IMG/VR virus record: IMGVR_UViG_3300007735_000804
Location: 124,001-188,000 of that record
DNA: 64,000 nt
Reading direction: 5' to 3' (one strand)
The translations under genes and the position numbers were made by a program. Shown here piece by piece: positions 2,809-24,202 of the stretch (its first letter is position 1; each line of letters starts with the position of its first letter). Under the pieces are notes generated by a model, which was not told where the DNA came from, searched no databases, and was given only the letters and a program-made list of their open reading frames with translations.

Positions 2809-3078
2809 TCAGTTTGCGTAGAGTGGGAGTTTCTTACGGAGACGGATTGCGTCTTCTAATACATCACCAATCTGTTCGTAGATGTAGTCGCAACCTCCTA
2901 CATCACAGAGTACATCTTGAGTGAAAAGTGATGGGAAATACTCCTCTTGAGTCATCTCCTCATTATACTCAAACACATCATGTTGAGTGAATACAAATGC
3001 AGCACATCCTGCGTCCTCACCTTGACTCTCAATCAGTTGGTTGATAGTGTCACGAAGTTCGGAAAGTGTGCGGTACAT
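2809..3078 (-). CDS. hypothetical protein
   Basis: ORF track 89 aa; tiling. Confidence 0.65.
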   Translation of the reverse strand: MYRTLSELRDTINQLIESQGEDAGCAAFVFTQHDVFEYNEEMTQEEYFPSLFTQDVLCDVGGCDYIYEQIGDVLEDAIRLRKKLPLYAN

Positions 3079-3417
3079 AATCAGTTCAGGAGTTCAGTTA
3101 CAAAATTAAGAGTTATCTTTGTTCTTGCTGATAGTTGATGAAGTTTGTCATCATCAACATTTAGGACTACATTTTCACTCTTTGGTAGAAGTTCTTGAAA
3201 GGATTTGAGTGTAGTATAAATGTAATCCAGTTTTTCGGAATTAGTCATTCATCGTCTCCAAAGTTGTTAGTGAGGAAATCTTCAAGTTCGATGAGTTTGC
3301 TGTCACTCAAAGAGACAATGTACTCATCGACAATCATAGCGAGAAGGTCATGATCTTCCCTACATTTAGCATACAAGAACTCAAAGAGTTCTGTACCTGT
3401 AGAATAGCGAAGGTCAG

Positions 3418-3618
3418 TCATTTCAGAATGATACGATAATCAATGGATTTGACACACCAACCAGTAGCGGCGGTGATTTCTTCTACGAGGTCATCTTCAT
3501 CATCTGCTTCCCAAATTGTAGTACGAACATCGCAGATGAGATCTTCTTGCAAACCAGGAGAAAGTGGTTCACCATCAGACTCAAAATCAAACTCAATTTC
3601 AGTAACTTGGAATTGCAT
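3418..3618 (-). CDS. acidic hypothetical protein
   Basis: ORF track 66 aa, downstream of the promoter at 3653. Confidence 0.7.
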   Translation of the reverse strand: MQFQVTEIEFDFESDGEPLSPGLQEDLICDVRTTIWEADDEDDLVEEITAATGWCVKSIDYRIILK

Positions 3619-3652
3619 TACTTACGAAGAGGAGAATTGAAGTAACGAGTGA

Positions 3653-3710
3653 AGCATAGCACCAGGATGATGCCAGTGGAGATGACACCGACCAGTCCTA
3701 GAACTGTCAC
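3653..3710 (-). promoter_or_regulatory. early promoter cassette
   Basis: TGcTATGCT -10; CGACCAGTC-CTAG-AACTGTCAC 3689-3710. Confidence 0.6.
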
Positions 3711-3744
3711 AGCATCACCAGTGAACGAATAGGTTTCAATCATT

Positions 3745-3894
3745 TTAATAGGTCAGGAGTGCGGATACTTTATCATACAACTGGGAAACATCTACGCCCA
3801 GGATTTCACTACATTCCTCCCAATCTTCATGAAACTCGATGAGATCCAGCAGGGCACGAATCTCCGCTTGGTTTAGTTCAAGAACTTCTGCCAT
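3745..3894 (-). CDS. hypothetical protein (49 aa)
   Basis: MAEVLELNQAEIRALLDLIE... Confidence 0.55.
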   Translation of the reverse strand: MAEVLELNQAEIRALLDLIEFHEDWEECSEILGVDVSQLYDKVSALLTY

Positions 3895-3895
3895 T

Positions 3896-4015
3896 TCAGT
3901 AATCATAATCGGCGGCAAGATACTCATTCATGTTGAACTCTTCATCGTTCAACTCTGGGATATCAAAAATCTCACCAGGAGCATCTTGAATCTCTTGCCA
4001 AAGTTCATCAAACAT
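3896..4015 (-). CDS. very acidic mini-protein (39 aa)
   Basis: Read by hand: MFDELWQEIQDAPGEIFDIPELNDEEFNMNEYLAADYDY; first gene after the promoter at 4040. Confidence 0.6.
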   Translation of the reverse strand: MFDELWQEIQDAPGEIFDIPELNDEEFNMNEYLAADYDY

Positions 4016-4039
4016 GGTGTGTCTTTCAGGGACGAATGT

Positions 4040-4098
4040 AATGTATCAGGGGAGAGGGGGCAGATCAACCCCCCTTGTGCCACCTTCTCAACTGGCAC
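4040..4098 (-). promoter_or_regulatory. early promoter cassette
   Basis: TGaTACATT -10; GGGGG/CCCCC hairpin; GTGCCACCT-TCTC-AACTGGCAC 4077-4098. Confidence 0.8.
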
Positions 4099-4101
4099 AC
4101 A

Positions 4102-4260
4102 TTAAATTACAGAAACGTTAACCTCTTTAATATTCAAACCCATTAATTGGTTTGTAACACGATTGCAGATCACTTCGGTAGGGTTCTTTAACTTCGAACG
4201 CTCATACCAAATTGTACAGCAACCGTCATAAGTTTCGACACGAATTCGAATGTCTTTCAT
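4102..4260 (-). CDS. hypothetical protein (52 aa)
   Basis: Read by hand: MKDIRIRVETYDGCCTIWYERSKLKNPT... Confidence 0.6.
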   Translation of the reverse strand: MKDIRIRVETYDGCCTIWYERSKLKNPTEVICNRVTNQLMGLNIKEVNVSVI

Positions 4261-4283
4261 CGATCAATTGCGACGACTTGAGT

Positions 4284-4342
4284 AACATAACCCAGCACGT
4301 GGCAGAACGCAAGGGGGTGTGTGCCAGTTGATCAACCGTCCT
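4284..4342 (-). promoter_or_regulatory. early promoter cassette
   Basis: -10 TATGTT; GTGCCAGTT-GATC-AACCGTCCT 4321-4342. Confidence 0.65.
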
Positions 4343-4421
4343 CATTCTCAATAAGATCTTGTTATTGAGAATCAATAAGGACTAGTAATTGAGAATAAGA
4401 TCCAATATTTAAACTGGCACA

Positions 4422-4574
4422 CTAGTCGAACGGATCGAATTCTTTTACCCTAGAATGCACTTCCTCGTCACCCTGCAGGTCTAGGATATCACGCCAATTG
4501 ATATCATCCACATCTAGATCATCATATGCTATGATGTCTAGTGTAACTCGTATGTGACGTTTTTGTGCTATCAT
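4422..4574 (-). CDS. acidic hypothetical protein (50 aa)
   Basis: Read by hand: MIAQKRHIRVTLDIIAYDDLDVDDINWRDILDLQGDEEVHSRVKEFDPFD. Confidence 0.6.
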   Translation of the reverse strand: MIAQKRHIRVTLDIIAYDDLDVDDINWRDILDLQGDEEVHSRVKEFDPFD

Positions 4575-4583
4575 AAGATCTAG

Positions 4584-4736
4584 TTATGCGTAATGACGAT
4601 ATGCAAGTGCTTCGTAATCTTGCCCGTCTCGTGCATAATCTTCGTCGAGATCTTGTGCATCTTGTGCATAATACTCGTCGAGATCGTATGAATAATCTGT
4701 TGCGTATGTATAGTCGAGATCGTAATCGTCGTACAT
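4584..4736 (-). CDS. Asp/Tyr-rich mini-protein (50 aa)
   Basis: Read by hand: MYDDYDLDYTYATDYSYDLDEYYAQDAQDLDEDYARDGQDYEALAYRHYA; TTGCAA-18-TGcTATAAT promoter at 4768-4797. Confidence 0.6.
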   Translation of the reverse strand: MYDDYDLDYTYATDYSYDLDEYYAQDAQDLDEDYARDGQDYEALAYRHYA

Positions 4737-4914
4737 AATGCTCGTCGAGATTGTATGTGACTAGATGATTATAGCATAATTCTCGACGAGTTTGCAAGCC
4801 TTATGAATGCACAGGTCTCGTCGAGATCATAATGATATATATGTATTCTCGACTAGATTTGTGTTCTTATGATGACATTAGATCTCGTCGAGTTTCTTAT
4901 AAGGTCTCGTCGAG
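4641..4914. repeat. array of 9 CTCGWCGAG palindromic nonamers (6 perfect)
   Basis: Starts at 4641, 4674, 4710, 4741, 4782, 4817, 4848, 4884, 4906. Confidence 0.85.
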
Positions 4915-4953
4915 TTTTGTGTGGGTCTCGTGGCATTTTCGCGGGCGGCGGAC

Positions 4954-4982
4954 TTGACAAACTGCGCGTCTTATGATACGCT
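4954..4982 (+). promoter_or_regulatory. divergent sigma70-type promoter on the + strand
   Basis: TTGACA-17 bp-TACGCT with TG extended -10. Confidence 0.55.
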
Positions 4983-5007
4983 CGCTAAACTCACAAGTCT
5001 TGGAAGC

Positions 5008-5128
5008 ATTTATAAGGTATTAAACATAAGAACTGGAGAGATTTATAAGATATTAAACGCAAAACTTAACACCTTATTCTCAACGATATTCTCAATTGAT
5101 TCTCAATTATTGCAATCTTATTGAGAAT
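5008..5128. repeat. ATTTATAAGRTATTAAAC x2 and ATTCTCAA(T) x3 plus an inverted copy, before an AT-rich tract
   Basis: Direct repeats 5008-5025 and 5041-5058; ATTCTCAA at 5076, 5088, 5099; ATTGAGAAT at 5120. Confidence 0.75.
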
Positions 5129-5261
5129 GTTACAACAAACACAAATATATTTAAAAATACCTTTTTTAATTAAATTTAAGTTAAAATCCTATAAAACAGG
5201 TATAATTTCACTATTTGTATAACCTTGACTCTGTATATACTTCTCCCACAGAGATGCGTCT

Positions 5262-5522
5262 TCAATCGTATAAAAAGTTGCGATTTGTTTGGATTGTTTG
5301 CTCTTTTTGATTTTGGTGTAGATTACTTGGTATTTCATAATAATGTAGATGAATGGGTTGTGAATCGTTCCAATGTCTTATGACCCCTGCAATAATGAAT
5401 AGATTAGTAAGAAGATAAGTGCTGAATATAATAGTGCGTATATAAGCAACGTTGTCTGCTTCTCTATCATCATTAGTTGCTTTATTTCCTAATGCTTTTG
5501 CCCATAGTCTCCACATCTTCAT
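5262..5522 (-). CDS. hypothetical membrane protein
   Basis: MWRLWAKALG..D.EAD..A.IRT followed by a hydrophobic helix. Confidence 0.65.
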   Translation of the reverse strand: MKMWRLWAKALGNKATNDDREADNVAYIRTIIFSTYLLTNLFIIAGVIRHWNDSQPIHLHYYEIPSNLHQNQKEQTIQTNRNFLYD

Positions 5523-5745
5523 AAATTGATTTTCTTGACTTGACATAAGTTAATTCACCCCACTGATCAGAATAACACAATACAAGTAATCGATTATTAG
5601 CATGAAAAGGTGCTGCTGATAAATTTAGATCATCCTTTGGTTTAACCTTTGCTTCAATGGTAATGTACTCATTATCCTTATAATACACCCATCCTTCAAT
5701 ATGAGGTTTCCACTTCACATAATCATTCACCTTTGGTTCATACAT
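5482..5745 (-). CDS. hypothetical protein
   Basis: ORF track 87 aa. Confidence 0.7.
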   Translation of the reverse strand: MYEPKVNDYVKWKPHIEGWVYYKDNEYITIEAKVKPKDDLNLSAAPFHANNRLLVLCYSDQWGELTYVKSRKSIYEDVETMGKSIRK

Positions 5746-6028
5746 ACGCTGCTTCCAATGGAGTTTGTTTGATGATCATAGCAGAATATGGACTTGTATG
5801 CTCTACACTAACAATGTTCCCGACCGTGGATGAGTTAATGGGGGTGTGATATTGTTTTGTTTTGGTATTGTAGAATCCCCAAATACAACGAACGGGATCA
5901 CCAAGATTATAATCAAACCGACGATCATAATGAATCCAGATTGCGATGAGATTGCGCTTAAAGTCAGTTTGCTCATAATGCATTCCTTCTGGAGGTTTGT
6001 GAGGAAATTCAATTGTCACGGACTGCAC
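5738..6028 (-). CDS. hypothetical protein
   Basis: ORF track 96 aa. Confidence 0.7.
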   Translation of the reverse strand: MQSVTIEFPHKPPEGMHYEQTDFKRNLIAIWIHYDRRFDYNLGDPVRCIWGFYNTKTKQYHTPINSSTVGNIVSVEHTSPYSAMIIKQTPLEAAYV

Positions 6029-6166
6029 GAAGACGATTGGGGGAATAACCTAAAGACAAGTAATTGTTTAGCAACAGATCGCATTGCTCTTTTGTTAGAG
6101 CTTTTGCTTCCTCATCAATCAATTCCCATCCTGTTGTTGTCAGTTCTTGAATTTGATACAATTGCG

Positions 6167-6397
6167 TCATGTGGTAAATGCCTCCAGAAGTCCAGACTCA
6201 TATTCATCCTGCAATGGAAACTTCTGTGCATTCACAACACGTTCCATAATTCGATCTGTATATCGATCATCAAATGATTGCTCTTTAGATAGAATTTGAA
6301 ATGCTTCGGTATCTGATTCAGCAATCAGATTGATTAGACCACCATATTCAGATGAAGGAAATGGCACCCAGTAATCAACAATGTACAGATTTTTCAT
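6167..6397 (-). CDS. hypothetical protein (YIVDYWVPFPSSEYGG)
   Basis: ORF track; TTGACA/TAAAAT promoter at about 6421-6449. Confidence 0.7.
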   Translation of the reverse strand: MKNLYIVDYWVPFPSSEYGGLINLIAESDTEAFQILSKEQSFDDRYTDRIMERVVNAQKFPLQDEYESGLLEAFTT

Positions 6398-6410
6398 TGG
6401 TTGTTTGAAA

Positions 6411-6581
6411 CTACTCCTCTATTTTAGAATGAAATTTGTTGTTTGTCAACTGTCTTTGAAGTTCATACTTAACAGGTAAAAGATGTGAATGCAAATGGTG
6501 TTCATAGTCATTTCCTTTCAACAATGAAATGAGACTATCAATCTGATGAATGCCCAGCACCATCTTCATTTCTTCGGTCAT
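6411..6581 (-). CDS. hypothetical protein (56 aa)
   Basis: Read by hand: MTEEMKMVLGIHQIDSLISLLKGNDYE... Confidence 0.55.
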   Translation of the reverse strand: MTEEMKMVLGIHQIDSLISLLKGNDYEHHLHSHLLPVKYELQRQLTNNKFHSKIEE

Positions 6582-6760
6582 ACAAACTCTGCCATATAAT
6601 AATCAACAGTCACCTCAAGTTCTGCTGCTTTTGTTTCAAAATAACCTTGTGTATACTGTCGTGCTTCTTGATATTGCACATGATTCTCAATTTCAACATC
6701 AGCATGTTTCATAAAATCTTGAAATGCAATGATGAATTGTTTCAGATCTTCATCGTTCAT
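6578..6760 (-). CDS. hypothetical protein
   Basis: C-terminus KAAELEVTVDYYMAEFV; tiling. Confidence 0.6.
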   Translation of the reverse strand: MNDEDLKQFIIAFQDFMKHADVEIENHVQYQEARQYTQGYFETKAAELEVTVDYYMAEFV

Positions 6761-6886
6761 TGGCACATCCAATTGTTGAACAGTAATAAGAATCGTACAT
6801 TTTCCGATCACGTTGAATCAGAAAGGCATTATATCCGATGATGAACACCAATGCTATAATGCCGTAAACAACATATTTTGATTTCA

Positions 6887-7150
6887 TCAGCAGGCACCAT
6901 AGAAAGGGTTACCAGTTTGAGGCAGATCCTGATTGTCACCCGTGATGATGTAATCATATGCCAGGCGCTCACGAATTGCAACTGCCTTCTCCACACGATT
7001 CAGAAACTTCTTGGAGATTTGGTCAATACCCTTCCAGGACAGAATTTGCATACACCATTCTTCTGAAATGTCACCATAAGGAGTGGCAACAGGATAGAAA
7101 CCAACCAGCATCGTGCCGTCTTTGGACTGGAGGGTAGGGAAGTCAGGCAT
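6887..7150 (-). CDS. hypothetical early protein
   Basis: MPDFPTLQSKDG..., directly after the promoter at 7175. Confidence 0.7.
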   Translation of the reverse strand: MPDFPTLQSKDGTMLVGFYPVATPYGDISEEWCMQILSWKGIDQISKKFLNRVEKAVAIRERLAYDYIITGDNQDLPQTGNPFYGAC

Positions 7151-8787: not shown

Positions 8788-9207
8788 CCCATTCTTATCA
8801 AATAGGTATTCAAGATATAGGGTTTCTTCTTGCTCCCGTGCCTCTATTTCGTGTGCTTGATGCCAATAGTCCACATTTTCCATGCATTCTTTACCATAAT
8901 ACATTTTTCCGCTTCGCAACCGCAGTGAACCGACTACCCACTGCCGCAGGTGCGTCAGTTCATGCAAAAGGGTTTTTATATACAACTCCTCATCCATATG
9001 GGCATTCAGTTCAATCAGAAAGTGACGGGGACGATAAGTTTCACCCACAACATCACAATACCCATAAACACACTCACGATTTAGACCACGATGCTCAATA
9101 TCCACCATGATCTTGTGTCGTGGAAAGAACCTATTCAGAAACCAAGCGGTAACATCCTCACAGACCCGCTTGCGATAACCATATCCAGAATGCGTGATGT
9201 AAGACAT
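8731..9207 (-). CDS. zincin-like (HExxH) metallopeptidase
   Basis: TLLHELTHLRQW plus downstream HEIEA (third ligand Glu). Confidence 0.75.
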   Translation of the reverse strand: MSYITHSGYGYRKRVCEDVTAWFLNRFFPRHKIMVDIEHRGLNRECVYGYCDVVGETYRPRHFLIELNAHMDEELYIKTLLHELTHLRQWVVGSLRLRSGKMYYGKECMENVDYWHQAHEIEAREQEETLYLEYLFDKNGWTVPQVAQFFGNRLCSAL

Positions 9208-9268
9208 TGACCCCAATGCAAAAACCAAATGAAAGAAGAAATGAAGATGAGTTTGTCAGTCTTGGTCA

Positions 9269-9637
9269 TTAGTTACAACCGAATGCGGCACCTCCTAAAA
9301 ATGCTCCAAGGGGAACAGACCATTTGTAACCATCACCACGACTCATACTAGCAGCAACACCACCGCCGAGTATACCACCTAAAAGGGTTTTTGTGGGATC
9401 ACAATAACTCCTTCGATTAGGTGAACTATTTCGATAATAGTTGCGTCCAGTGCTACCACAAGGTACATTGTATTTTTCAGTATTCACATATCCTTGTTGA
9501 TAGTTACCATACCGATCATAATATCCAGGCACATAAACCTCACGGGTCCTGGTGCATTCTTCATATTCAGTCACTTGTTGTGCAGAGACTGGTATTGAAA
9601 AGAAAGTAAGTGGTAAGAGAAGAAGTAATTGTTTCAT
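9269..9637 (-). CDS. secreted protein with C-terminal glycine zipper
   Basis: Signal peptide MKQLLLLLPLTFFSIPVSA; LLGGILGGGVAA...PLGAFLGGAAFG. Confidence 0.7.
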   Translation of the reverse strand: MKQLLLLLPLTFFSIPVSAQQVTEYEECTRTREVYVPGYYDRYGNYQQGYVNTEKYNVPCGSTGRNYYRNSSPNRRSYCDPTKTLLGGILGGGVAASMSRGDGYKWSVPLGAFLGGAAFGCN

Positions 9638-11047: not shown

Positions 11048-11824
11048 TTAGTATAATACCTTCAGCAGCGGATTCTGGTGGTCTTGTGCCACCTCTTCAA
11101 CTGGCACAGCATTGAGGCGCTGTTGAGCAGTCAAAAAGTATTCTTCCTCACGCTCAATACCGATAAAGTTTCTATTTTCTAATTTAGATGCAATTCCAGT
11201 GGTGCCAGCACCCATACATGGGTCAAGCACCAGATCGCCCTCATTCGAGAATGTTCTAATCAACCAGCGATAAAGATCAACGGGTTTCTGTGTAGGATGG
11301 TGCTTACCTTCACCCTCCGCAGTCTTAAAATAGATAACGCTGCGAGGATACCTCAACCCACTGTCATTCTTAACATGAACTGCCTTTGTTTGCACACCAT
11401 ATGCTTCAGTGTCTCTTACAGCAGTTCCCTTATCATAAGGAGTTCCTTGTGTCATTTGAGGATTATATGTGGGTTGTTTCTTATAAAACACCACAATATC
11501 TTCATGAGCACGAAGAGGTTGCTTTTTGGCATTCAGATAACCTGTTGCTTTTGATTTCTCCCACACCATTGTGTACTTGAAGTCTTTATAATTTGAAGCA
11601 ATCAGAACACTTGTAAATGGTTGTGCTGCTGTTGAAATGATGGGGCAAGTTGGTTTACAAATATAATCCACAAGTTCCCAAAATCGCGGGTAATCAATGA
11701 TTGTGTCCCATTCATTTCTTTTATTCAGAGTTCCATAAGGAAAATCTGTCAATAACAAATCAATGCTCTGGGATGCAAGATTACCCAGAACATCAAACAT
11801 ATCTCTATTGTATAACTGACTCAT
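11048..11824 (-). CDS. N6-adenine/N4-cytosine DNA methyltransferase, beta class
   Basis: Motif IV LLTDFPY, HPTQKP, motif I LDPCMGAGTTG, GIERE; ATGA coupling to the upstream gene. Confidence 0.9.
   Translation of the reverse strand: MSQLYNRDMFDVLGNLASQSIDLLLTDFPYGTLNKRNEWDTIIDYPRFWELVDYICKPTCPIISTAAQPFTSVLIASNYKDFKYTMVWEKSKATGYLNAKKQPLRAHEDIVVFYKKQPTYNPQMTQGTPYDKGTAVRDTEAYGVQTKAVHVKNDSGLRYPRSVIYFKTAEGEGKHHPTQKPVDLYRWLIRTFSNEGDLVLDPCMGAGTTGIASKLENRNFIGIEREEEYFLTAQQRLNAVPVEEVAQDHQNPLLKVLY
11050..11107 (-). promoter_or_regulatory. early promoter cassette
   Basis: TATACT; GTGCCACCT-CTTC-AACTGGCAC 11086-11107. Confidence 0.8.
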
Positions 11825-12399
11825 TGATTCAACCACTCTACAAATTTGTTCACTTCTTCAACATCAAGTTGAAAATCAGCATTATACTGCTCCATGTAAA
11901 TTGCACGTTGGGCATTACGCTTTTTATGCTGATTGATAATGAATACTTTAACTTCTTTACCAGTCATTTTCTTAAAATATGCGAGATAATAATTAAAAGA
12001 ATCTTGTGATACACATTCTTGACCAGCAAGAATTGCATACTCTACACCATCAGGCACATCAGGCGATGCATCCAATTCAATAAAATCTAACACTGCACGT
12101 TTAAGATAGCAAGCATCCAAATAGCATTTGGATTCTACTGCTTTAACCATCACACCATCACGGTAGATATGCTTATCAACCTGCAAATTCTTCAACGAAA
12201 CTCCATCAATCTCTTCTGTTCTCTTATAATCATTCTTCTTTGCTTTTAGACTAATGTTGGTACAAATGCGTTGAATCAAATTTTCAAAAATTACACCAGA
12301 TCCATTTCTTGCTTTGCCACCGCCACCAATTAAATGAAGACGTGGAAGATCTTTTATCTCTTGATTATAAGTTTCAATGATAGTGTCAAGATTAGACAT
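11821..12399 (-). CDS. putative PD-(D/E)xK restriction-type endonuclease
   Basis: G..FE ... QVD ... ESKCYLD pattern; translationally coupled to the MTase. Confidence 0.6.
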   Translation of the reverse strand: MSNLDTIIETYNQEIKDLPRLHLIGGGGKARNGSGVIFENLIQRICTNISLKAKKNDYKRTEEIDGVSLKNLQVDKHIYRDGVMVKAVESKCYLDACYLKRAVLDFIELDASPDVPDGVEYAILAGQECVSQDSFNYYLAYFKKMTGKEVKVFIINQHKKRNAQRAIYMEQYNADFQLDVEEVNKFVEWLNQ

Positions 12400-23020: not shown

Positions 23021-24202
23021 TCAGCGCCTGACAACGCTGATAGCAGGTAAACCCTGCTGAAACACGGTGTCTACGACCGCCTGAACGCTCTTGGCGGTGC
23101 TGACCCCCACCTTATCATAGACAGGCACACAGACCAGTCCAAAGGTCTTCTGGGCGCCTCCCAGACGGATCACGCGACCGATGCTCTGAGAGATACCGAT
23201 GTAGTCCATGTTCCGCATGAACAGAACTGCTTCCAGACCAGACACATTGATGCCCTCGGACAGAATGCTGTGATGAAGAACCACAAACTTTTTGGAGGAG
23301 TCTTTGCCCCAAGCATTGAGAGTGTCAAAGAATACCTCACGGTTGACCTTTTGACCGTCAATCACAGCACCAGTCTTGGAAGTGATATACATCCAAGAAT
23401 AACCACGCTCTTTGAGGTCAGAGCAGAAGTCAGACTGTGAAATCAGATTGATGATCTGTTTGGTAGAACGAGCGCAGATTAGGATCTTATCCAGACCGTT
23501 ATCGTCAATGGTCTCCAGCAGGTTAGCAGAGTCACGATCAGCAATCATCTGCTTGTCCTGAACCATCTCAAGTTGCTTGACCACAACTTTAGGGGGCAAA
23601 ATGTAACCTTGCTCCACCAGTTCAGGAGCAGGAACATTACAAATGACGTTGCCGTAGACCTCTGGCATATTCATACCAGGTTTAGAAATGGTTGCAGAAT
23701 GCTTTGGAGTCGCAGTGAAGAAATAGCAGCGGTCAGCAGCAGAAGCGAAGTGCTCCGTAGCAGGGAAAAAGTTACGTTGGACTGAATTGTGTGCTTCATC
23801 GAAGTAAATGGTATCAACGTGAATATCTGCCTGCTGCAGACGTTGCAGGGAGTTGTAGGTAGTGAAGATCAGTTGATGTTTGTAGGCACGACGAGACCAG
23901 TTGTGAATCTCACTGGGTTTCGTGGTGCTCTGGTGATGAGTCTCACCGCTGTGAACGTGCAGCACAGCAACGTTGGTGATAAACTCAAGGTACTCGGCAG
24001 ACAACTGCTCCGCCAGGAGGATGCGAGGTGCCACCACTACGATGGTTTTAGGAGCATCAGACTGGAACTCACGCAGAGCATCAAAGATCATCGTAGGGGT
24101 CTTGCCCGCACCAGTCGGCATGATCAGCTGACCTAGTTGATGCTGTTCCATAGCATCAAGACCACGCTGCTGGTGGGGACGAAGTTCGAACACAGGTCTC
24201 AT
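23021..24202 (-). CDS. superfamily 2 (ResIII/DEAH-like) helicase
   Basis: Q motif LRPHQ, Walker A PTGAGKT, DEAH, TAT, EGINV, QSIGRVIR. Confidence 0.9.
   Translation of the reverse strand: MRPVFELRPHQQRGLDAMEQHQLGQLIMPTGAGKTPTMIFDALREFQSDAPKTIVVVAPRILLAEQLSAEYLEFITNVAVLHVHSGETHHQSTTKPSEIHNWSRRAYKHQLIFTTYNSLQRLQQADIHVDTIYFDEAHNSVQRNFFPATEHFASAADRCYFFTATPKHSATISKPGMNMPEVYGNVICNVPAPELVEQGYILPPKVVVKQLEMVQDKQMIADRDSANLLETIDDNGLDKILICARSTKQIINLISQSDFCSDLKERGYSWMYITSKTGAVIDGQKVNREVFFDTLNAWGKDSSKKFVVLHHSILSEGINVSGLEAVLFMRNMDYIGISQSIGRVIRLGGAQKTFGLVCVPVYDKVGVSTAKSVQAVVDTVFQQGLPAISVVRR

Follow-up and report, generated by a model that had tools for sequence, protein, structure and literature searches.

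Does an array of short repeats in the genome of a cyanobacterial myovirus mark a place where replication of its DNA begins? The array lies at 4641–4935 of a 64,000-nucleotide stretch of DNA (here the window, positions 124,001–188,000 of the 213,274-bp virus record IMGVR_UViG_3300007735_000804, which CheckV rates as complete), within a module of about 0.8 kb that is situated at 128.7 of 213 kb, in the interior of the contig. Cyanomyoviruses are among the most abundant viruses of the ocean and their replication draws on the photosynthesis and the nucleotide pools of the host; we know of no replication origin in this group that has been mapped by experiment. A review mentions only one predicted theta origin, that of phage Syn9 (PMC2984593). 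The original prediction for the present locus, made from the sequence alone, placed it in a cyanomyovirus and proposed that it is either a replication origin or a landmark for packaging or injection. The first of these statements agrees with the closest DNA matches of the window, which are Synechococcus myoviruses of the Kyanoviridae.

Judged from its sequence features, the locus is the strongest candidate to date for an origin of replication in these phages; it is unproven, and the prospect that it is an origin resembling T4 oriE or those of iteron plasmids appears to be about even. An origin is favoured because the motif is unique, the layout is iteron-like, one of the promoters, P(+), is followed by no open reading frame (ORF), relatives possess DnaA boxes, and an AT-rich tract follows the accessory-site slot. 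From left to right the module comprises a left hairpin, the phrog_12516 gene, the MYDD gene, an iteron, the promoter P(−), further iterons, a conserved stretch, the divergent promoter P(+), tandem repeats, the slot and the AT-rich tract. Iterons lying over a promoter, an ORF-less divergent promoter, a repeat slot and an AT-rich tract are conserved across many phages.

The iteron array and its conservation

Exact copies of the nonamer CTCGWCGAG occur six times in the window, all at 4674–4914, against 0.09 expected, and none of 100 shuffled sequences reached six; the whole 213,274-bp genome contains the same six and none elsewhere. A one-mismatch search adds copies at 4641 and 4848, and a repeat finder those at 4710 and 4927. 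The array thus consists of ten copies on the + strand, all in one orientation and spanning about 290 bp, the nonamer cores of which start at 4641, 4674, 4710, 4741, 4782, 4817, 4848, 4884, 4906 and 4927. Four of them are degenerate, namely 4641 (TTCGTCGAG), 4710 (ATAGTCGAG), 4848 (CTCGACTAG) and 4927 (CTCGTGGCA). The first nine, with spacings of 33, 36, 31, 41, 35, 31, 36 and 22 bp, had been located correctly in the original prediction. The relaxed forms CTCGWCKAG and GTCGAGAW also have nearly all of their genome copies at this locus. The array covers part of an ORF, the 5' untranslated region (UTR), the spacer of P(−) and the region upstream of both promoters.

The component words of the motif are scarce genome-wide: CTCG is present at 0.33 and TCGA at 0.39 of expectation, and CTCGAG is absent where 24 would be expected. 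This depletion looks like avoidance of restriction sites of the XhoI/AvaI and TaqI types, the iteron being built from avoided words. In the same genome CG stands at 0.60 of expectation and GATC at expectation.

With the loci of relatives set in the orientation of the window, about 90% of copies have AT to the right of the core, irrespective of a central T (348) or A (47), and the left flank is weak. Because the flank is the same with either central base, the repeat unit is a directional 11-mer, CTCGWCGAGAT, and not a simple palindrome, and the array is one of direct repeats in a single orientation, i.e. of iterons. The earlier description of the repeats as palindromic therefore holds for the nonamer core and fails for the full unit. 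They had also been described as phased over two to four helical turns, which is right only approximately: taking the ten window copies alone, 10.5-bp phasing is absent (R 0.15) and a period of 11.0 bp fits (R 0.73; p about 0.005 before correction for the scan of periods). In relatives the spacings cluster at 30–33, 39–43 and 60–67 bp, statistics which are inflated by shared ancestry.

Conservation of the array and module, which the original prediction had set as a check, was borne out: the module recurs in three isolates and in over 100 contigs from uncultured cyanophages. A pattern scan of IMG/VR returned at least 120 loci, about 109 of them with cyanophage-like GC content and clusters of 4–8 copies; these and the loci of isolates carry our L numbers where they are named below. 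The isolates are S-SRM01 (Serangoonvirus), S-T4 (Tamkungvirus) and S-SKS1 (Llyrvirus), and the common model cyanomyoviruses gave no match to the module. In 65 dereplicated loci the iterons keep a register of −96, −63, +3, +44, +77, +109 and +142 relative to the ATG of the MYDD gene, with a period of about 32–33 or 41–42 bp. The locus consequently shows both the evenly spaced short direct repeats, syntenic in relatives, that distinguish oriE, and the three or more same-orientation iterons of iteron plasmids and lambda. In some variant lineages (L132–L137, L140 and S-SKS1) units of the form (G/A)TCTCGTR, partly arranged as an uninterrupted run of six 11-bp repeats adjoining the −35 of P(+), replace the iterons, and the ORF and P(+) are kept. 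Degenerate copies of this TCTCGTR type, TCTCGTG, occur in the window at 4627 and 4926.

The left part of the array lies within the MYDD gene (4584–4736, minus strand), the first of the operon of P(−), which encodes an Asp/Tyr-rich protein of 50 amino acids (MYDDYDLDYTYATDYSYDLDEYYAQDAQDLDEDYARDGQDYEALAYRHYA; pattern MYDDYDLDY...DLDE...DLDEDYARDGQDYxxLAYRHYA). In 81 loci to which the motif led, its ORF is intact and in frame, of 42–71 codons, the N- and C-terminal ends being conserved; it is present too in 25/25 loci found independently through a neighbouring gene. Iterons 4641, 4674 and 4710 lie inside it and read GAT CTC GAC GAG (DLDE). In the gene-ascertained set of loci, the Leu of LDE is encoded by CTC in 24/26 cases (13/40 elsewhere), the Asp by GAC in 21/26 (66/179 elsewhere) and the Glu by GAG in 22/26 (21/40 elsewhere). 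Since these codons are locked to the motif, the iterons within the ORF are maintained at the DNA level besides their coding role; the fixed register in the 65 dereplicated loci, together with a codon choice locked beyond the need of the protein, argues for selection at the DNA level. The interval from 4641 had been taken for the longest gene-free one of the window. Its first part (4641–4736) is coding, and the real intergenic gap is 4737–5188 (452 bp), which is indeed the longest without a minus-strand ORF outside the block of + strand genes.

Divergent promoters, accessory slot and AT-rich tract

Two conserved promoters of sigma-70 type, both candidates for early-mode transcription, diverge from the module. 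P(−) (4797–4768, minus strand) consists of TTGCAA, an 18-nt spacer and a TG-extended TATAAT (10/12 matches in the promoter scan, with TG before the −10) and would drive a two-gene operon, with a predicted start near 4761. As originally predicted, an iteron (4782) lies within its spacer; that at 4741 falls on the 5' UTR, 4 nt upstream of the ATG. Relatives share this arrangement, the −35 being found within ...CTCGWCGAGATGCAA... and abutting the AT flank of an iteron, the −10 within TATTRTAGCA, and an iteron 2–5 nt upstream of the ATG.

The G+C-rich patch followed by a + strand promoter was likewise found where it had been predicted. The patch (4936–4953; cgcgggcggcggac) is situated just upstream of the −35 of P(+), and relatives retain between iterons and P(+) a stretch GTGTGGGTCTC...ATTTTCGCGG...GGGG, of which ATTTTCGCGG...GGGG corresponds to the patch. 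P(+) (4954–4990, + strand) is a divergent, extended −10 sigma-70 promoter made up of TTGACA (4954–4959), a 17-nt spacer with TG at 4974–4975, and TACGCT (4977–4982); its predicted start is near 4989. Across 69 loci the −35 is TTGACA in 59, TTGACT in eight and TTGACG in two. In 66 the TG has precisely the place of an extended −10, and nearly all have a −10 of the form TAnnnT, its inner bases being variable. P(+) combines a canonical −35 with a TG-extended −10 and has no MotA box of the kind seen at T4 oriF and oriG. Neither the window nor S-SRM01 has an ORF after it, and the same is true of many other loci. The fold of the P(+) transcript (4988–5200) is not significant (z-score −1.16), only the ATTCTCAAT hairpin being stable, and the covariance models of Rfam 15, run over 3000–7000, revealed no relevant family, the one chance match (NEAT1_2, E 0.14) lying outside the locus. 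A possible inverted repeat CTTRTG...CAYAAG around the −10 of P(+) was dropped, being without covariation (CTTATG is accompanied by CACAAG in 23 loci and by CATAAG in 14).

Downstream of P(+) are two 33-bp tandem units (4992–5024 and 5025–5057, + strand; core CATTTATAAG), which account for the direct repeats 33 bp apart of the original prediction. Relatives contain from two to more than eight units of differing length in which the TTATAAG/CATAAG core is kept. A role as minus-strand late promoters of T4 type was rejected, for CTTATAA is kept and the final A is absent. The T4-type late promoter TATAAATA itself occurs 18 times on the coding (minus) strand of the whole genome and not once on the other, usually 25–45 nt upstream of a start codon.

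The accessory-site slot (5074–5129, + strand) holds TTATTCTCAAC (5074) and two copies of ATTCTCAAT (5088, 5099), head-to-tail and spaced 12–14 and 11 bp, and an inverted ATTGAGAAT (5120). Seven of the ten genome copies of ATTCTCAAT or ATTGAGAAT sit in two clusters that flank the module. At the same place 13/70 relatives possess one to five perfect DnaA boxes, TTTTCCACA or TTATCCACA, in one orientation, head-to-tail and 10–28 bp apart, often 11 bp (for example TTTTCCACAggTTTTCCACAgg). The density of boxes in the slot is 1.51 per kb, compared with 0.12 per kb (relaxed pattern) elsewhere in the loci, about 0.1–0.3 boxes being expected by composition. TTTTCCACA is the form of DnaA box found in cyanobacterial oriC (PMC4674748). 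Among the isolates, the slot of S-SKS1 contains one TTTTCCACA followed by two TTATCCACA. A direct swap is seen in locus L060, in which three boxes are followed by GAATGTTATAAAACAC...TTTTTTAATACCTTTTTTAATTAAATTTAA, as are the ATTCTCAAT copies of the window, and precede the conserved GAATGTTAYAAAACAC...AT-rich sequence. In other loci copies of the TTCTCAA type lie 11–12 or 22–24 bp apart, and the slot of S-T4 contains ATTCTYA three times with a 12-bp period. Because DnaA boxes and ATTCTCAAT swap in place, the slot can be described as a lineage-specific cassette of short head-to-tail candidate sites, and that of the window is the apparent positional analogue of the DnaA-box clusters of relatives. 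No gene of the neighbourhood is exclusive to loci with either type of slot.

The iterons are thus accompanied by DnaA boxes as well as an AT-rich region in 13/70 relatives, and the window has the AT-rich region with ATTCTCAAT in the place of the boxes. ATTCTCAAT matches TTWTNCACA at 6–8 of 9 positions, and the sole DnaA-box match close to the locus is TTATGCACA at 4663 on the minus strand. No oriC-type cluster of consensus boxes (TTWTNCACA or TTTTCCACA) was found in the window or the genome, whose nine perfect boxes are scattered. Two perfect TTTTCCACA lie outside the window at genome positions 6619 and 6708, on opposite strands and 89 bp apart, one intergenic and the other within a gene, with no further boxes or AT-rich tract nearby; the pair is probably due to chance. 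A scan of IMG/VR for pairs of TTTTCCACA found them to be widespread on unrelated contigs, and since the module accounts for only three of the roughly 115 loci sampled, such pairs are not specific to it.

The AT-rich stretch of the original prediction was confirmed, with 12–14% GC from about 5137. The tract (5137–5220), a candidate unwinding element that includes the conserved motif ATATATTTAAAAATACCTTTTTTAATTAAATTT, keeps this composition over 60–80 bp and is among the 5–9 most AT-rich stretches of the 213 kb. It begins about 150 nt downstream of the predicted start of P(+), past the tandem repeats and the slot, and has counterparts in S-SRM01, S-SKS1, L033, L038, L060, L062 and L113. In about 30/69 related loci homing-endonuclease genes follow the slot directly on the + strand, that is, in the direction of P(+) and on the other strand from the rest of the genome. 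Most are of the GIY-YIG type (for example in L007, in the 9134–9343 region, and in L011, L014, L017, L036, L064 and L079), and a few (L073, L078, L140) are of a second type that starts with MNSRYRILSELEDF. The point of insertion is within the AT-rich tract, which is shortened there, and the inserted gene abuts the next minus-strand gene. The window has none.

A possible origin and the alternatives to it

As an origin, the locus would be a cis-acting nucleoprotein assembly site arranged around paired divergent early promoters. A sequence-specific protein would coat the iterons, shut or tune P(−) and organise the DNA, after the model of plasmid Rep proteins on iterons that overlap their own promoter, and host RNA polymerase would transcribe from P(+) toward the AT-rich tract. 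A second factor would occupy the slot, this being host DnaA in the relatives that bear TTTTCCACA and, here, whatever recognises ATTCTCAAT. Transcription, through an R-loop primer or transcriptional activation, and the bound factor would jointly open the AT-rich DNA; leading-strand synthesis would be started by the transcript or by the act of transcription, and a replisome of T4 type would then load, ahead of recombination-dependent replication.

Among known systems T4 oriE possesses evenly spaced direct repeats and an early-mode promoter, and oriF and oriG a promoter and an A+T-rich unwinding element at which the transcript would prime the leading strand (PMC3016281). The present locus resembles oriE in that evenly spaced short direct repeats adjoin small genes and are syntenic in related phages (PMC3016281), and in its candidate early-mode promoter of host sigma-70 rather than MotA type, both phages being T4-like myoviruses. 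It differs in that the repeats of T4 are 12 nt long, have an undefined role and show no sequence similarity to those described here; in that no homolog of RepEA or RepEB was evident, no search having been aimed at them; in that neither DnaA boxes nor an accessory slot is reported for oriE; and in that the repeats extend here through the promoter into an ORF. With oriF and oriG it shares a promoter directed towards A+T-rich DNA, no protein product being needed. However, the promoters of T4 are MotA-dependent middle promoters and that of the module is of the −35/extended −10 type, and in T4 the unwinding element is directly downstream, in a minimal origin of about 100 bp, whereas here the tract lies about 150 nt downstream.

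Iteron-type theta origins are those of P1 (oriR), pSC101, RK2 (oriV) and R6K (gamma), to which may be added lambda ori, located inside gene O; in these plasmids and in lambda the iterons overlap a promoter or gene and are accompanied by DnaA boxes and an AT-rich region. The module likewise shows same-orientation iterons, some of them over the promoter of the adjacent gene and some, as in lambda, inside coding sequence, an AT-rich region, a neighbouring GC-rich patch and, in relatives only, host DnaA boxes. In contrast, a recognisable Rep or O initiator is encoded beside the iterons of those replicons, while here the adjacent genes specify acidic proteins of 50 amino acids with no detectable DNA-binding fold; plasmid iterons are contiguous 19–22-mers, while those of this lytic T4-like phage are about 32 bp apart; and its locus is without DnaA boxes. 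The 2–5 perfect boxes of relatives, head-to-tail, often 11 bp apart and beside an AT-rich tract, recall cyanobacterial oriC (PMC4674748), from which the window differs in having ATTCTCAAT in the slot, no dnaA/dnaN context and a phage-specific iteron array alongside. There is also a likeness to parC of plasmid R1, where a promoter is flanked and overlain by some ten short direct repeats, to which ParR binds cooperatively with autoregulation; for the present locus the likeness is one of sequence layout. However, parC lacks DnaA boxes, an AT-rich tract and a divergent non-coding promoter, partition would be of no obvious use to a lytic phage, and no gene for a partition NTPase or adaptor (ParM or ParR-like) was found among the neighbouring ORFs with Pfam and PHROGs.

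The proposal of a replication origin in the original prediction accordingly gains comparative support from the conserved architecture, the DnaA boxes in 13/70 relatives and the oriE-like layout, and several observations weigh against it. The cumulative GC skew, one of the checks then suggested, falls monotonically without a turn at the locus, although this test is weak because the genome is transcribed almost wholly from one strand, the minus strand. A DnaA-box cluster is absent both at this locus and anywhere in the genome. No initiator gene was found: the two module proteins have no Pfam domain, structural match or recognisable DNA-binding fold, and an initiator may be encoded elsewhere. The module is limited to a sub-lineage of cyanophages, being present among isolates only in the three named above. 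The positions of the iterons relative to P(−) are fully explained by repression alone. Finally, in some relatives a span of 10 kb contains two or three iteron arrays, of which the extra ones (3–5 copies) immediately precede the start codons of further small early genes; because of that position, and since they are accompanied by neither P(+) nor slot, they resemble operators more. Homologs of the genes behind these extra arrays occur in the present genome without iterons.

These last points are the substance of a purely transcriptional explanation, according to which the iterons are operators by means of which a phage- or host-encoded regulator switches the divergent immediate-early P(−) and P(+), the product of P(+) is a short non-coding RNA, and the slot repeats or DnaA boxes, with the hairpin, only stop or insulate transcription. 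We regard this as the main rival, possible but less probable than an origin. The conserved register of one iteron in the −35/−10 spacer of P(−) and of another directly upstream of the ATG is explained by such a switch, extra arrays lacking P(+) and the AT-rich tract fit it, one hairpin sequence ends both outward transcription units, and DnaA on its boxes can block or modulate transcription. Yet 8–10 sites over 290 bp, continuing for 100 nt into a codon-locked coding region, exceed the usual need of an operator; the motif is confined to one locus of this genome and so is no general early-gene switch; head-to-tail DnaA-box clusters beside an AT-rich tract are the signature of an origin and not of a terminator; and no regulator gene was found, the one winged-helix gene considered as a source of the iteron binder, in locus L032, being absent from this genome. 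An unlikely alternative would have the motif act in RNA, as AUCUCGWCGAG sites for, e.g., a translational repressor or processing nuclease in the 5' UTRs and intercistronic regions of long minus-strand early transcripts. All copies are indeed in one orientation relative to the coding strand, every array has a copy 2–7 nt upstream of a start codon, and in a genome transcribed from the minus strand read-through RNA could include the upstream copies. On the other hand, the nonamer core is palindromic in DNA, as is typical for sites of dimeric proteins that bind the double strand; half of the copies are situated upstream of the point where P(−) would start transcription, and one lies inside the promoter spacer; the regular period of about 32 or 42 bp persists in non-coding DNA; and neighbouring copies mostly share their central base (348 T vs 47 A), so that pairing between copies in RNA is not selected.

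The insertions at the AT-rich end raise the further question of whether the module serves homing endonucleases as a landing pad, or is a mobile cassette, free-standing endonuclease genes targeting conserved non-coding DNA and using its promoter. At least two kinds of such genes in about 30/69 loci, all on the + strand after the slot and inserted in the AT-rich tract, and a perfect 15-bp inverted repeat around the module, would suit this account. It nevertheless appears decidedly improbable: the module is fully conserved where there is no endonuclease gene (the window, S-SRM01), the endonuclease genes carry their own upstream sequence, the genes on either side are for the most part in synteny and not scattered, and the iterons and DnaA boxes are left unexplained. 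Least probable of all, and without support in this analysis, is the packaging (pac) or injection landmark of the original prediction. Its only point is that the site is unique, repeat-rich and non-coding. Packaging in T4-like phages is of the headful kind, from concatemers, and leaves circularly permuted ends without a fixed landmark; the locus is interior to the contig and has unrelated coordinates in the records of isolates, and pac sites are not characterised by promoters, DnaA boxes or an AT-rich tract.

Returning to the origin, a more specific proposal, which we put forward tentatively and consider rather doubtful as a whole, is that Serangoonvirus, Tamkungvirus, Llyrvirus and their uncultured relatives replicate from a single plasmid-like origin, composed of phage iterons and an exchangeable accessory cassette (host DnaA boxes or, as here, ATTCTCAAT sites). 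This would be a DnaA-assisted, iteron-type theta origin in a T4-like genome, at whose unwinding element endonucleases have repeatedly inserted. A full-text search of the available library found no paper with the motif in cyanophages and none linking cyanophages to DnaA boxes. As an origin or control region of the iteron/promoter type, the locus is new in being that of a T4-like cyanophage and in having iterons dual-coded in a small gene; its exchangeable accessory slot, which may hold host DnaA boxes, and the repeated insertion of endonucleases at its AT-rich end are further new traits. As a candidate it is precise, conserved and open to testing: three cultured phage-host pairs have it, its cis elements can be mutated (iterons, P(+), slot and AT-rich tract), and it predicts that host DnaA binds a slot of the S-SKS1 type. 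If this is true, a T4-like phage recruits the initiator of its host and the unexplained iterons of T4 oriE gain a working mechanism; if the array is one of operators only, the locus still yields a new regulatory motif, along with two conserved early genes that lacked annotation and a non-coding early transcript that is also conserved.

Small genes and boundary elements

The MYDD gene is unannotated in the GenBank records of S-SRM01 (L005, MW015081, about 4590–4727) and S-T4 (L006, MH412654, about 2497–2643), and in S-SKS1 a version of 67 amino acids is annotated as hypothetical (SWZG_00191). The AlphaFold2 model of its product is of low confidence (predicted local distance difference test, pLDDT, 62; predicted template modelling score 0.19). 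The second gene of the operon (4422–4574, minus strand) specifies an acidic protein of 50 amino acids belonging to phrog_12516 (PHROGs match, E 6.9e-15), and tblastn located it in 85–107 related loci. This protein has no Pfam match above threshold, and its AlphaFold2 model (pLDDT 82) is almost without secondary structure and gave no match in Foldseek (PDB) or in a PDB sequence-profile search. The idea that it is a DNA binder like AbrB/MazE or of the ribbon-helix-helix kind was unsupported, there being only sub-threshold Pfam matches (MazE, E 0.17); the further sub-threshold matches were 11 Tudor-like ones (E 0.002 or weaker).

Near the extra arrays of some relatives lies a gene for a protein of 86 amino acids (L032:1468–1728, minus strand), which by eye, no family scan having been run, has the look of a winged-helix protein. 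It is present in 14 related loci, including L026, L036, L056 and L074, is absent from the present genome, and could be a lineage-specific regulator. A scan of bacterial genomes for iteron pairs was uninformative as to a host binder, high-GC coding matches dominating and no cyanobacterium being among the 80 matches listed. The neighbours of the module are small ORFs of early type, including Kyano_Gp96, DUF6267 and several PHROGs. The same early region encodes an N6/N4 DNA methylase (11048–11836, minus strand; PF01555, E 1e-30) and a UvsW-like helicase with ResIII/DEAD domains (23021–24202, minus strand).

Directly downstream of the two-gene operon is the left boundary element (4319–4422), a split inverted repeat of GTGTGCCAGTT (4319–4329) and AACTGGCACAC (4412–4422) that encloses hairpin copies of ATTCTCAAT/ATTGAGAAT at 4344–4396. 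TTCTCAA..TTGAGAA hairpins are found to the left of the module in 30/82 related loci. The 15-nt ATCTTATTGAGAATG forms the 3' arm on both outward-reading strands (4343–4357 and 5115–5129), and the module is in this way bracketed by a perfect 15-bp inverted repeat (I3). No intrinsic terminators were found in 4200–5700. A recurrent element, CAAGGGGGT-GTGTGCCA-(about 10 nt)-TGGCACAC, occurs between small minus-strand genes at 1659–1690 and 4075–4103, with half copies at 2610, 7206 and 8243 and a split copy at 4316–4328/4412–4422 that has the ATTCTCAAT hairpins in its loop; it may be a 3'-end or processing signal. Relatives possess related GTGCCAGT...GTCACA elements downstream of the phrog_12516 gene, which are sometimes followed by a canonical terminator.

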